Part shown: positions 5,002-28,563 of the stretch, one piece after another
Layout: each line of letters starts with the position of its first letter
Position numbering within the stretch: the stretch's first letter is position 1
From: Macrostomum lignano
Lineage: Eukaryota
Direction: 5' to 3'
DNA length: 64,000 nt
Assembly: GCA_002269645.1 (NCBI GenBank)
Contig: NIVC01000359.1
Coordinates: 1-64,000, forward strand
Made by a program: the position numbers and the translations under genes
Notes under the pieces: generated by a model
The model's database searches: none
Told to the model about the DNA's origin: nothing
What the model saw: only the letters and a program-made list of their open reading frames with translations

Positions 5002-8000
5002 GCTGATTCCCAGGTGCAAAAGTTCTACTTGCCCTTCTCTGGCCTAACTGCCACCTCGAGGAGTTCAAGCATTGGGAATGTGCATGATTATTACAGAAAC
5101 CTAGAGCTGGAGCTCACTGTCACCTGTGACGCTTTTCGCGCTTCAGTTCAACCTAGCGAATTTTCGAGAAACTTATTTGGTTTTCAGACACGCCTGGTGC
5201 TGCCACAGGGCCAAGTCTTTTATTCTGTGCGCTACCACCAGCCCAGGTATCCATTCCGCACTGTCATTAATCGGGTCAGACCGTTGACACTGCTGCCAGG
5301 TTTTCACCTGCTGACTACCTCGAATAGCCAAGATGGCTGGTCCGACTTCTGCTGCCAGCTCTTTGCCGTATGCGAACTGTCTGTCAATGACGGCGCCTTC
5401 GCCCAGGCGCTTGTTCGCCTTGCGCTTAATCTTCCACGGACCTCCCCAACGCTGTATATTCGCCTAAAAGATCAGCAGCCAGCCTTAATCGACTTCTTTT
5501 TCCAACAGGCGAACGCGCAGCCAGAAGTTCTCTGCGTCTTTTCCGATATCGTCTGGCGCCTCGCCAAGCAGGCTAATGTTGTTTTGGTGTTCGAAGCTCG
5601 TCACCTGGTCTCTGCAATTCAAATCCTGTCTGTTCATAGGAATGCCAGGGGCCCTGCCCGTTTCCTATTGGTGCAATTCGGCCTCGAATTTCTTGACTGG
5701 AACGATGGGCCCGATGCTGATTCTGGCCTGGCTGACTTCGCTGCCAGAGCTGCGCCCGCGCTGGCTGAGGCCGAGGCCTCTATTGCGCCTGAGACTGCTG
5801 TTTCGAGAAACAGCCCCGCTGCATTGTTATCTCGTCTGGTGTCACGTTTGTCTATGAGATGGGGCGCCAGGCTCGCTGAGGAGACTGTATCTACCAGTGC
5901 CCAGGGTAGCCGGCCTAGAGGTTCTCTGGTCACTGGCACGCTGACGCATGTCATCCGAAGTCTGAAGCCCGATCAGTAAGTTTTGCTAACGAAACACCCT
6001 CTCTTGTAAAGGCATCCCTTCCACTCTGGAACAGGCATCCCTTCCACTCTGGAACAGGCATCCCTTCCACTCTGGAACAGGCATCCCTCCCACTCTGGAA
6101 CCGGCATCCCTTCCACTCTGGAACAGGCATCCCTTCCACTCTGGAACAGGCATCCCTTCCACTCTGGAACAGGCATCCCTCCCACTCTGGAACCGGCATC
6201 CCTTCCACTCTGGCACAGGCATCCCTTCCACTCTGGAACAGGCATCCCTTCCACTCATGCACAGGCATCCCTTCCACTCTGGAACAGGCATCCCTTCCAC
6301 TCTGGAACAGGCATCCCTTCCACTCATGCACAGGCATCCCTTCCACTCTGGATTCTAGAACAGGCATCCCTTCCCCCACTCTAAAACCGGCATCCCTTCC
6401 ACTCTGGAACAGACATTCTCTACAGTCTAAATCAGAGATCGTCACTCAAGAAGTAGCTGTTCTTCTAAAAGAAGAAAGGGTCCCTTAGTGAAGGGGTCGG
6501 AAGCCTATCGAGGGCTTCAAATGATGATTTCGTTAGTCTGAACTACTCGTAACATCCTTTCGTTCAGACCTGAGCATGCAGTGTTTCTATTTAAAGCAAT
6601 CTTACTCCCAGTTTCGTAATTTTTACCCAACTGCCTTCAATTCTCAGCTACCGCAACCTTCTGCGCGCCTCGCTGCTCTCGCAAGTGTTCGCCCGCCACT
6701 TCCCGGATCTGTGGCGTCAAGGCGGGTCCCCAATGCAGCTTCTGCCCCGTCTGCTGTCTCTGTCCGAGCTGTGGCAGCCGCTGGACGACTGTCTTCACTT
6801 CCGCGACCAGCTCGGAGCCGAATACGTGGATCAGCTGGCCGAGTTCTCTCGCCGTCTCGCCGATGGACTCCTGGAGCGGACGCTGAGCCTCGCCGAGTTC
6901 TGGCAACTGCGGGACAGCCTGAGTGGCCGCAGCTGGCCGGAACTGTGCCGCCTGCTGTCCTTCTTTGCCTGCCGCTCCAAGCCGCTGCCTGCTGACGCAT
7001 CGGACAGAATCGGACAGCTGGACGCGCTGATGTCCGACCGACTGGCCGAGGACGAGGCCGCCTGCCGGTTGCTGCGGCGACTCGCCTTCGAGCCTCGGTG
7101 GCCAGTGGCTGGCGACCGCGGCGGTGACTGGGACCTACAGGCAGCCCTGGACGGCTGGCTGAACTCCCGGCCGAGAGTGGTCCTTGGCGAGCTGTGCAGC
7201 TTCAGCCTGCTCGAGGCTGTGACTGGCCAGCCTCTGCCAGACGGCTTGAAGCATCTTCTGGCCTCGCGTCTGTTCTTTGCTGTTGCCAGGCGACAGCTGC
7301 GGCAGGTGGGCAGCGACGGCTGCGGCGGCGGACTTCTCGGTCTTCTCACCCGAGCTCTGCGAGACTTCCAGGCCACTTTTGGAGCCGGTAAGATATTGAG
7401 AGGAATCTGTAGGATTTGTGGGTCTGGCACGGCGCTCTGAGGTGCCAGCACTGCAGGCTCGATGCCAAGTGCAGTCGCAATAATTTGGGGCTAAACTAAA
7501 ATCATAGCTACATTCCTTAGAATCCTTCCACTTGTTAGCAGCGCTTGTCTAGTAAACACATGGTAGTGACTCTGGGCCCTGCCGTCGGAAGCTTCCGGAC
7601 TAGTGAGTTTCGCTGATCCCTTCCACTCTGGAACAGGCATCCCTTCCTCTCTGGAACAGGCATCCCTTCCACTCTGGAACAGGCATCCCTTCCACTCTGG
7701 AACAGGCATCCCTTCCACTCTGGAACAGGCATCCCTTCCACTCTGGAACAGGCATCCCTTCCACTCTGGAACAGGCATCCCTTCCACTCTGGAACAGGCA
7801 TCCCTTCCACTCTGGAACAGGCATCCCTTCCACTCTGGAACAGGCATCCCTTGCACTCTGGAACAGGCATCCCTTCCACTCTGGAACAGGCATCCCTTCC
7901 ACTCTGGAACAGGTATCCCTTGCACTCTGGAACAGGCATCCCTTGCACTCTGGAACAGGCATCCCTTGCACTCTGAAACAGGCATCCCTTCCACTCTGGA

Positions 8001-28300: not shown

Positions 28301-28563
28301 CGTCGGCGGAGGAGGAACACGACAGCGACGAATCCGAGGCAGGCAATCTATTCATGTTCGACTATGAGCACATGCCGCCCTGGCTTAGCGATGATGACGA
28401 GGACGAGTTCGATGAAGAAGAAGAGAATCTCAGCATGGACAGCGACGAGTTCTACGAACGGCAGATGCTCGAGGACATTAACGGCTTCGGCTCGTCCGAT
28501 GCGGACAGCAACAGCAGCTCCGAGGACAACGACCACGATTTGGATGATGATGATGATGATTGA
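19343..28563 (+). CDS. Large F-box/LRR protein, copy B (~1459 codons, 9 exons, no ATG in first exon)
   Basis: Exons 19343-20346, 20608-21398, 22168-22354, 23055-23330, 23685-23766, 24192-24962, 25658-25942, 26271-26588, 27901-28563. Same intron positions and phases as copy A; same F-box, LRRs and acidic tail. Confidence 0.72.
20382..20558. repeat. 22-bp minisatellite (CTCTTCACTCTGGAACAGGCAT)n, intron 1 of copy B
   Basis: About 8 units; a 1-nt-shorter homolog of the copy A 23-mer. Confidence 0.95.
21450..22088. repeat. 24-bp minisatellite (TCTGTAGCTGGTGTTACAGTGCCG)n, intron 2 of copy B
   Basis: About 26 units. Confidence 0.95.
22490..22925. repeat. Degenerate GGAATTGGGATTTT-type repeat, intron 3 of copy B
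   Basis: Low-complexity G/T/A tandem motif. Confidence 0.85.
23903..24151. repeat. 24-bp minisatellite (TTTGAGCGTGCACTTTAGCGAGTA)n, intron 5 of copy B
   Basis: About 10 units. Confidence 0.95.
25028..25618. repeat. 18-bp minisatellite (GACATCCTGTTAGCTACA)n, intron 6 of copy B
   Basis: About 32 units. Confidence 0.95.
25955..26240. repeat. Degenerate AATACCCC-type repeat, intron 7 of copy B
   Basis: Recurrent TCAATACCCCAG motif. Confidence 0.85.
26632..27800. repeat. 15-bp minisatellite (TAGTGTGATTTCCAT)n grading into a 17-bp CAGTCACAAGTGATTTC unit, intron 8 of copy B
   Basis: Direct reading. Confidence 0.95.

Follow-up and report, generated by a model that had tools for sequence, protein, structure and literature searches.

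Near-identical exons between unrelated introns in two tandem Macrostomum lignano paralogs: a probable case of homology-limited gene conversion

How can two neighboring genes be almost identical in one exon, deeply diverged in the next, and share nothing recognizable inside the introns between them? The question is raised by a 64,000-nt stretch of the Macrostomum lignano genome (forward strand of contig NIVC01000359.1, assembly GCA_002269645.1), hereafter the window. It carries two paralogs, A and B, arranged in tandem on the plus strand with 14.3 kb from start to start, an orientation and closeness that favor conversion; a tblastn search of the window returned only these two copies and no third paralog. 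The exon models, which we built by hand, are listed in the table together with the other features discussed here. They contain no frameshift in 2,846 codons, every one of the 16 introns is GT-AG, and all eight introns are retained in each copy. Because the exon lengths of A and B differ only by multiples of three, the two copies share all eight intron positions and phases, in agreement with an earlier note on this DNA.

Coordinates within the window of the two genes, their near-identical tracts, and associated features (SL, spliced leader)
Feature	Copy A	Copy B	Strand	Remarks
Gene	5002..16049	19343..28563	+	9 exons, intact frame, and GT-AG introns in each; 1405 codons (A), 1441 codons (B); UniProt P0001 and P0003 are of A type
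Exons 1-4	5002-5975, 6648-7387, 8889-9063, 9844-10122	19343-20346, 20659-21398, 22168-22354, 23055-23330	+	
Exons 5-9	11146-11236, 11353-12114, 12303-12587, 12777-13100, 15462-16049	23685-23766, 24192-24962, 25658-25942, 26271-26588, 27901-28563	+	
Putative SL trans-splice acceptor	4995..5001	19336..19342	+	TTGCAG in A, adjoining first coding base 5002; TTTCAG in B, adjoining first coding base 19343
Tract 1	6638..7395	20649..21406	+	Exon 2 and adjoining intron bases (10 nt in intron 1, 8 nt in intron 2); 758 bp, 3 differences (99.6%)
Tract 2	9825..10060	23036..23271	+	19 nt of intron 3 and 5' three quarters of exon 4; 236 bp, 8 differences (96.6%)
Tract 3	11442..12118	24290..24966	+	Exon 6 from about codon 30 onward, followed by GTGA; 677 bp with 3 synonymous differences; holds the F-box-like motif
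Tract 4	12290..12590	25645..25945	+	13 nt of intron 6, exon 7, and GTA; about 300 bp, 3 synonymous differences
Tract 5	12862..13096	26350..26584	+	3' part of exon 8; 235 bp, 8 differences (96.6%)
Tract 6 (weak)	15533..15634	27972..28073	+	Inside exon 9; 102 bp, 7 differences (93%)
Minisatellite, intron 1	6010..6416	20383..20558	+	23-mer in A; 22-mer in B, 85-90% like the A unit
Minisatellite, intron 2	7616..8717	21450..22092	+	23-mer in A, 48 copies, same unit as in A intron 1; unrelated 24-mer in B
Minisatellite, intron 6		25029..25616	+	18-mer in B
Minisatellite, intron 8	13759..15052	26651..27799	+	37-mer in A; 15-mer and 17-mer in B

Exon 1 of both genes begins directly at an AG acceptor and lacks an ATG, a feature that adds to the earlier description. 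The trans-splice acceptor motif of M. lignano is [T/C]TNCAG, and its spliced leader ends in ...TTGCATG (PMC8629364). In A and B alike, the reading frame is open from the first exon base (frame 0) and in phase with the leader-terminal ATG, with an in-frame stop close upstream; a tblastx search for a conserved upstream exon of the pair found none. Judged from these sequence features, the spliced leader probably provides the start codon of both genes.

The divergence between the copies is distributed very unevenly along the coding region. Nucleotide identities in exons 1 to 9 are 61, 99.6, 75, 92.5, 68, 95, 98.9, 86, and 63%, and the corresponding dS values are 1.06, 0.015, 0.63, 0.19, 0.60, 0.075, 0.040, 0.27, and 0.83. 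Exon 1, described previously as roughly half identical in protein, proves to be 50.5% identical, and the values for exons 3, 5, and 9 (the last taken as a whole) bear out the description of exons 3 and 5 and the end of exon 9 as clearly diverged. Exons 2, 6 (beyond about codon 30), and 7, to which about three synonymous changes each had been attributed, have exactly three differences each, all nine of them synonymous; no amino acid differs in exons 2 and 7, and exon 2 contains an unbroken identical run of 646 nt. Fourfold-degenerate sites show the same heterogeneity among exons (χ2 = 158, df 8, p = 3e-30), with a proportion of differing sites (p4) of 0.02 in exons 2 and 6 versus 0.40-0.47 in exons 1, 3, and 9. 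In a GENECONV-type permutation test of the kind proposed in the earlier note, the longest identical run covered 133 fourfold sites and exceeded all 10,000 permutations (null mean 31, maximum 70).

If the nine differences in the youngest tracts were random, the probability that all would be synonymous is 6e-6, so they represent real mutations filtered by selection rather than sequencing noise. All three differences in exon 2 fall within its first 112 nt (P = 0.003), and this clustering, together with the unequal divergence of the tracts, points to several conversion events of differing ages. GC3 is 0.76-0.89 in the tracts versus 0.57-0.73 in the diverged islands of exons 1, 4b-6a, 8a, and 9b, an excess that may reflect GC-biased repair; exon 3, with a high GC3 (0.8) though unconverted, is an exception. 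The N-terminal part and the acidic tail had been described as diversifying. Both are indeed diverged, but their dN/dS of 0.4-0.5 lends no support to positive selection and indicates relaxed purifying selection instead.

Near-identity is confined to six blocks, which include most of exon 4 and the 3' part of exon 8, as had been noticed before; tract 2, in exon 4, is an older or rarer conversion. Across the six, block length and divergence are inversely ranked without exception (rho = -1, n = 6), the shorter blocks being the more diverged: 0.4% at 758 bp, 0.4% at 677 bp, 0.7% at 294 bp, 3.4% at 236 bp, 3.4% at 235 bp, and 6.9% at 102 bp. The tract edges lie close to exon edges, at -10/+8 nt for exon 2, -19 for exon 4, +4 for exon 6, and -13/+3 for exon 7, and the earlier claim that identity reaches only a short way into introns thus holds, at 8-19 nt (10 in intron 1, 8 in intron 2, 19 in intron 3, and 13 in intron 6). 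Five edges coincide with exon-exon junctions at which the neighboring exon is unconverted (E1|E2, E2|E3, E3|E4, E7|E8, and E8|E9), and tracts 3 and 4 are separated by an unconverted intron 6. On the acceptor side, exact intron runs of 10, 19, and 13 nt precede the converted exons (introns 1, 3, and 6) versus 3, 8, 3, 3, and 3 nt at unconverted junctions, a signal of intron co-conversion that comes from three acceptor sites only (exact rank test, p = 0.018). Donor-side identity stops 0-6 nt past the exon, with no difference from unconverted junctions (p = 0.18), and counts of ungapped 20-nt intron matches do not separate converted from unconverted junctions overall.

The intron interiors tell a different story from the tracts. 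After repeat masking, Smith-Waterman scores between homologous introns of A and B equal those of shuffled sequences in eight of eight introns. The earlier note had listed differing repeats in homologous introns (23-mer versus 24-mer in intron 2, 37-mer versus 15-mer in intron 8, and none versus an 18-mer in intron 6) and a related repeat in intron 1 only; we recover all of these, the intron 1 pair being a 23-mer and a 22-mer. Intron 6 is 188 nt long and repeat-free in A and 695 nt long in B. We also observe that the 23-mer of A intron 2 is shared with A intron 1, an addition to the earlier list. Tandem repeats make up 27% of the window, and 15% of the M. lignano genome (PMC5730564).

UniProt holds four M. 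lignano entries of this family (P0001-P0004, all fragments), which reproduce the A-type and B-type mosaics: P0001 and P0003 are of A type, P0002 represents a B-type variant, and P0004 is identical to B across exons 4-8. The islands are the same in the two A-type entries, and likewise in the two B-type ones. These proteins carry differences and frameshifts of their own and therefore derive from other DNA. Protein databases yielded no family members beyond the A and B types. We rejected P0003 as proof of moving tract edges: its B-type states at three A/B-diagnostic positions are ambiguous, as they may be ancestral and lost in A, and its 9-nt indel sits in a slippage-prone GCCAGC repeat.

Protein A has an F-box-like motif followed by Cys-rich repeats that resemble leucine-rich repeats (LRRs), encoded by exons 6-9. 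The motif can be recognized by eye, and the UniProt name of the M. lignano entries is 'F-box domain-containing protein'; Pfam scores for exon 6 and P0002 fall below the cut-offs, at 13.6 bits (E = 0.065) against 20.5 for the F-box and 18.4 bits against 27 for an LRR family. Whole protein A has no match in Pfam, and a PDB sequence search gave none either. An AlphaFold2 model of P0002 from a two-sequence alignment reached a pLDDT of 35 and is unusable. Searched as a profile, the exon 1 translations of both copies matched none of 1.84 billion cluster representatives; the N-terminal ~750 residues correspond to exons 1-5. The order of an F-box-like motif before Cys-containing leucine-rich repeats resembles that of FBXL-type F-box/LRR receptors of SCF ubiquitin ligases, from which A and B differ in their sub-threshold Pfam scores, the ~750 N-terminal residues without a relative among those representatives, and a long acidic tail. 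By sequence, the pair appears to represent a lineage-restricted, orphan F-box/LRR-like gene.

We favor, with a probability of about two in three, a history in which an old tandem duplication led to repeated gene conversion between the loci at the DNA level, within the blocks of homology that remain, a reading drawn from two DNA sequences. Since the duplication, the neutral sequence of A and B would have diverged to saturation, and the introns would have been remodeled independently by the birth and expansion of minisatellites and the insertion of dispersed repeats until their homology was lost. The copies would still exchange sequence by non-allelic conversion, that is, through homologous recombination of the ordinary kind between genomic sequences, with strand invasion and heteroduplex forming only where homology remains; each tract would thereby be trapped within one exon and a few splice-adjacent intron bases, which selection would have kept alike. 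The ends of a tract would be set by an intron that lacks homology or, within an exon, by a divergent island that bears indels. Long blocks (exon 2, the later part of exon 6, and exon 7) would be converted often and held at about 99.5% identity, and blocks of about 235 bp rarely, at 96.6%. Blocks already too diverged (exons 1, 3, and 5, the starts of exons 6 and 8, and the acidic tail) would have escaped and evolved independently under relaxed purifying selection. That divergence falls with block length is expected of homology-dependent recombination. Exons 6 and 7 are of equal youth, and the intron between them (188 nt in A, 695 nt in B) is unconverted; this implies either a separate event for each or conversion at a high steady-state rate.

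The earlier note's view of an old duplication kept partly homogenized by exon-confined conversion is upheld by the non-uniform dS, the non-homologous introns, and the tract ends at exon edges. It had left two mechanisms side by side, conversion stopped by repeat-rewritten introns and templating by RNA or cDNA, and our data favor the former. The latter supposes that a spliced transcript from one copy serves, either after reverse transcription or directly in double-strand break repair, as the template for the exons of the other, whose introns loop out and are kept. The confinement of homogenization to exons, with a tract dS far below intron divergence (the criterion for a cDNA donor; bioRxiv 10.1101/751792), the end of donor-side identity close to the exon, and the equal youth of exons 6 and 7 across an unconverted intron would all fit. 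A spliced template, however, lacks the identical intron bases 5' of converted exons 2, 4, and 7, and the five edges at junctions with an unconverted neighbor are not explained by a continuous cDNA unless recipient introns block the heteroduplex. Neither copy has lost any of its eight introns, although the classical cDNA-mediated recombination of Derr and Strathern reportedly removes them, and a tandem pair with a spacing of 14 kb is an ideal substrate for conversion at the DNA level. With the acceptor-side intron bases co-converted, the introns retained, and divergence falling with length, we prefer the DNA-level reading and regard transcript templating as unlikely. Its full form, in which transcripts homogenize exons in the germline or neoblasts and leave the recipient introns in place, is a doubtful proposition; to our knowledge, transcript-templated concerted evolution that spares introns is undemonstrated in animals. 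A milder form, in which ultra-fast turnover of intron minisatellites acts as a genome-wide recombination insulator and makes each exon its own conversion unit, shares with it the same low probability.

Other explanations fare worse. The two copies could be young duplicates whose diverged exons and introns were later overwritten from distant paralogs or homeologs, and further family members do exist (P0002 and P0003, the latter B-type at three diagnostic positions). Such import is far less parsimonious, as it would replace ~85% of the locus, including eight introns, and spare exon blocks to within a few nucleotides; with no third paralog in the window, none beyond the two types in protein databases, and the same islands within each type, we consider it very improbable. 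An assembly or polishing artifact, in which reads of one paralog (or of homeologous A'/B') corrected the other or the tandem arrangement is a mis-join, deserves thought in a species whose assemblies are redundant and difficult through hidden polyploidy (PMC5730564; PMC10733133) and in a family with four UniProt members that could cross-map. Yet polishing homogenizes only near-identical sequence and cannot place 99.6% tracts beside 61-75% ones, the residual differences are uniformly synonymous in frames that remain intact, and the same mosaics recur in proteins from other DNA; an artifact is thus a slim prospect. Uniform age under purifying selection alone would make the identical exons simply the most constrained, and they do encode the most conserved parts of the protein, but synonymous and fourfold sites are frozen along with the rest, and the strong non-uniformity of dS, contrary to what such selection would leave, rules this reading out for practical purposes.

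Interlocus conversion with islands of divergence is familiar from tandem or linked paralogs such as the fetal globin genes and the protocadherin clusters. It is also documented for mammalian BMP8A/B, DDX19A/B, and TUBG1/2, where raised GC3 served as a signature of conversion (PMC2720389), and for the GOT1 paralogs of Tigriopus (PMC3728101). The M. lignano pair resembles these in its old duplication, mosaic structure, significant identical fragments, raised GC3, and escaping islands. Unlike the mammalian tracts, which cross introns in exon-intron-exon blocks above 97% (PMC2720389), those of A and B are limited to one exon each, and no intron interior is converted; their introns are, in addition, filled with differing minisatellites. 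In fungal ribosomal-protein paralogs, exon-only homogenization has been attributed to cDNA donors (bioRxiv 10.1101/751792). Like A and B, these genes have homogenized coding sequence, diverged introns and flanks, and a dS far below intron divergence, but they are unlinked, highly expressed, and have zero or one intron, whereas A and B are tandem with eight retained introns. Conversion of A and B is, moreover, patchy within the coding sequence and includes acceptor-side intron bases that a cDNA donor does not explain. Homogenization of the fungal paralogs is said to have been reported by Pyne et al. in 2005 and by Evangelisti and Conant in 2010.

Overall, the locus reveals no new mechanism; as an example of gene conversion it is clear but ordinary. 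Neither gene conversion nor intron minisatellites at this locus are described in the M. lignano literature that we consulted, including PMC5730564 and PMC10733133. As a clean example with internal controls, the pair shows how the reach and frequency of conversion depend on the homology that is left: in six blocks of a single gene pair, divergence falls strictly with length, and introns rewritten by minisatellites would serve as barriers. Two full-length models of an orphan F-box-like gene, both unannotated, are a further gain. The case also carries a practical warning for work on the M. lignano genome: exon blocks of 700 bp can be 99.6% identical between paralogs or homeologs whose introns are unrelated, which affects read mapping, the specificity of RNAi and knock-outs, and orthology calls.

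The two tandem genes, A (5002-16049) and its paralog B (19343-28563), emerge from a repeat-masked self-comparison of the window as two collinear plus-strand regions, set in eukaryotic, tandem-repeat-rich sequence of which TRF masks 17,450 of 64,000 bases. Identities of the successive blocks are 62.6, 99.2, 71.6, 92.1, 69.6, 96.7, 98.4, 84.3, and 81.1%. Guided by the long open frames and by the sequence around block edges, we built nine-exon models with uninterrupted frames of 1405 codons (A) and 1441 codons (B) and GT-AG boundaries in 16 of 16 introns. Because exon lengths always differ by multiples of three, these two hand-built models share the position and phase of all eight introns, as an earlier note on the sequence had claimed. 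No third copy was found in the window by tblastn.

Divergence between these two copies, which are the ones that all DNA-level comparisons take in, is strongly non-uniform, with dS (Nei-Gojobori) for exons 1 to 9 of 1.06, 0.015, 0.63, 0.19, 0.60, 0.075, 0.040, 0.27, and 0.83. Every observation of the earlier note held when checked against dS, 4-fold sites, and exon differences: the exon 1 products are 50.5% identical where roughly half had been estimated, exons 3, 5, and 9 are diverged, and the approximately three synonymous changes reported for each of exons 2, 6 (after ≈30 codons), and 7 are exactly three, all synonymous. Exons 2, 6, and 7 differ at 4-fold sites with a frequency of 0.02-0.03, and exons 1, 3, and 9 with one of 0.40-0.47 (heterogeneity across exons, chi2 = 158, p = 3e-30), and a permutation test for conversion places the longest identical run, 133 sites, beyond the null distribution (mean 31, maximum 70, 10,000 permutations). 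Together, these two results rule out purifying selection alone. The diverged parts have dN/dS of 0.33-0.62, a sign of relaxed constraint with no evidence of positive selection; the diversification proposed for the N-terminal domain and acidic tail thus stands as divergence but not as positive selection.

We delimited six high-identity tracts between A and B. Longer tracts are strictly less diverged (rho = −1, n = 6), a relation to be expected where the frequency of conversion is governed by how far homology runs uninterrupted. The tracts have a GC3 of 0.76-0.89, and most of the diverged islands between them one of 0.57-0.73; raised GC3 serves as a signature of GC-biased conversion in other systems (PMC2720389). 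All three differences in exon 2 lie within its first 112 nt (P = 0.003), and this clustering, combined with the unequal ages of the tracts, calls for several conversion events. In the youngest tracts, every one of the nine differences is synonymous (P = 6e-6); both genes are under purifying selection, and these differences are real mutations, not sequencing noise.

Coordinates of tracts, repeats, splice acceptors, and neighboring features in the window
Feature	Coordinates	Strand	Details
Tract 1	A 6638-7395, B 20649-21406	+	758 bp, 3 differences
Tract 2	A 9825-10060, B 23036-23271	+	236 bp, 8 differences
Tract 3	A 11442-12118, B 24290-24966	+	677 bp, 3 differences
Tract 4	A 12290-12583, B 25645-25938	+	294 bp, 2 differences
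Tract 5	A 12862-13096, B 26350-26584	+	235 bp, 8 differences
Tract 6	A 15533-15634, B 27972-28073	+	102 bp, 7 differences
23-mer minisatellite, A intron 1	6010-6416
23-mer minisatellite, A intron 2	7616-8717		unit identical to A intron 1
22-mer minisatellite, B intron 1	20383-20558		related to A 23-mer
Acceptor TTGCAG/G of A	4995-5002	+	exon 1 begins directly after AG; matches [T/C]TNCAG
Acceptor TTTCAG/G of B	19336-19343	+	exon 1 begins directly after AG; matches [T/C]TNCAG
dCMP/cytidine deaminase	30111-30779		Pfam E = 1e-26
Sushi-domain gene	43283-43639		Pfam
G-rich (GGTTGAGGGGT)n array	44988-45958		strongly strand-skewed, GC skew +0.67
F5/8 type C-like domain	47346-47828		Pfam, below threshold
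C-rich (TCCCCTC)n array	49011-49700		strongly strand-skewed, skew −0.51
Second F-box gene, unrelated to A/B	57376-57900		Pfam F-box-like, E = 1e-8
BBS1	61998-62831	-	Pfam

With tandem repeats masked and 25 nt trimmed from either end, none of the eight A/B intron pairs gave a local alignment score above shuffles (z −1.0 to 0.3). Homologous introns carry different repeat arrays, and intron 1 is the only one with a related array, as had been described; its 23-mer and 22-mer units are 85-90% alike, and the unique intron sequence around them is unrelated. Exon 2 of A is flanked on both sides by arrays of one 23-mer, and the 22-mer of B occurs in intron 1 only. Old co-conversion, intragenic spread, and a mobile repeat family are all possible origins of this sharing. 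Identity extends only briefly into introns, also as described, in exact runs of at most 19 nt at acceptors and 8 nt at donors. Upstream of the tract-bearing ("converted") exons 2, 4, and 7, the runs are 10, 19, and 13 nt, versus 3, 8, 3, 3, and 3 nt at the remaining five acceptors (p = 0.018, exact rank test, three converted sites). Donor-side runs do not differ (converted 8, 4, 3, and 2 nt versus unconverted 2, 2, 5, and 2 nt), and an ungapped 20-nt count at the junctions does not separate the two classes.

Two dispersed repeats in A introns are absent from B. A tRNA-like element in intron 3 (9214-9283, +; Rfam tRNA match of 36.4 bits, none found by ARAGORN) has relatives at 40798-41002 and 51156-51222 (-) and is part of a ≈200-nt dispersed repeat that looks like a tRNA-derived SINE. 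The repeat in intron 8 (13301-13755) has relatives at 38965-39623 and 50897-51371, with 75-83% identity and partly inverted.

These observations fit a tandem duplication that is old and has been followed by repeated interlocus gene conversion at the DNA level. The old duplication and exon-confined conversion proposed in the earlier note are borne out by the non-uniform dS, the non-homologous introns, and the tract edges. Background dS is close to saturation or past it, and conversion would be able to act solely where homology survives. Heteroduplex would be halted by the non-homologous introns and by indel-bearing islands within exons, trapping each tract in one exon plus the splice-adjacent bases kept alike by selection. 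Fast minisatellite turnover may have made the introns non-homologous, and tandem repeats, at 15% of the M. lignano genome, are consistent with this idea (PMC5730564).

Of the two mechanisms the earlier note had offered, we favor halting at repeat-rewritten introns. Templating by cDNA or RNA, which we consider unlikely, would account for the exon confinement and for the equally young age of exons 6 and 7 on either side of an unconverted intron. It does not account for the intron bases that were co-converted at three acceptors, and neither A nor B has lost an intron. A young duplication later overwritten from other paralogs is considerably less plausible still, as about 85% of the locus would have been replaced with the exon blocks spared to within a few nucleotides. 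We give slightly less credence again to identity created by polishing, which cannot make 99.6% blocks beside 61-75% blocks and is contradicted both by the synonymous-only differences and by independent mosaics in UniProt.

Those mosaics are the sole database relatives of A and B, four M. lignano fragments annotated "F-box domain-containing protein" (here P0001-P0004). P0001 and P0003 belong to the A type, P0004 and copy B of the window are identical across exons 4-8, and P0002 is a variant of the B type; all show A-specific or B-specific islands around shared blocks, as in the window copies. Because they bear substitutions and frameshifts of their own, they come from other DNA, whether an earlier assembly, another A-B pair homeologous to this one, or both. 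Two entries of each type suggest that such a pair probably exists, consistent with the hidden polyploidy of M. lignano. P0003 has B-type residues at three A/B-diagnostic positions, one at the exon 6 tract edge; tract edges may differ between the two A-type copies, and ancestral retention accounts equally well for these states. The putative F-box/LRR assignment rests on the UniProt label and on an F-box-like motif with Cys-rich leucine-rich repeats in exons 6-9, for which Pfam scores are below threshold. A PDB search with the family protein returned no relative, its AlphaFold model, with a pLDDT of 35, is too poor to use, and the exon 1 profile has no match among 1.84 billion cluster representatives, making the N-terminal half an orphan.

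Exon 1 of both genes lacks an ATG and has an in-frame stop immediately upstream. The spliced leader of M. lignano has ATG as its last three bases and is joined at [T/C]TNCAG acceptors (PMC8629364), and trans-splicing affects about 39% of genes (PMC5730564). Since the A and B frames open with the very first base of exon 1 and are in phase with the leader ATG, the acceptor motif is present, and a search for a conserved exon further upstream found none, both mRNAs are probably trans-spliced, with the start codon donated by the leader.

Just upstream of A lies an inverted duplicate (4425-4619, -; 4661-4828, +) with one 39-residue ORF on both strands, which may be a small foldback element. The stop codon of B sits inside a (GAT)n array (28543-29070) that runs ≈500 nt further downstream; the first part of this repeat is translated as the poly-Asp tail, whose length is therefore probably unstable. 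Farther along, the G-rich and C-rich arrays lie ≈3 kb apart and flank the F5/8-C-like ORF.

Linked paralogs that convert in a mosaic fashion and keep islands escaping conversion are well documented (PMC2720389; PMC3728101). Whereas introns are converted together with exons in the usual animal cases (PMC2720389), conversion in this nine-exon animal gene is strictly exon-limited. For fungal ribosomal-protein paralogs, cDNA donors were proposed from an "exons only" pattern that A and B also display (bioRxiv 10.1101/751792). The A/B case is a tidy example of what follows from known homology requirements, and a conventional mechanism is preferred over an exotic one. Its value lies in the clear relation between tract length and divergence and in its relevance for work on the polyploid, repeat-rich genome of M. 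lignano.
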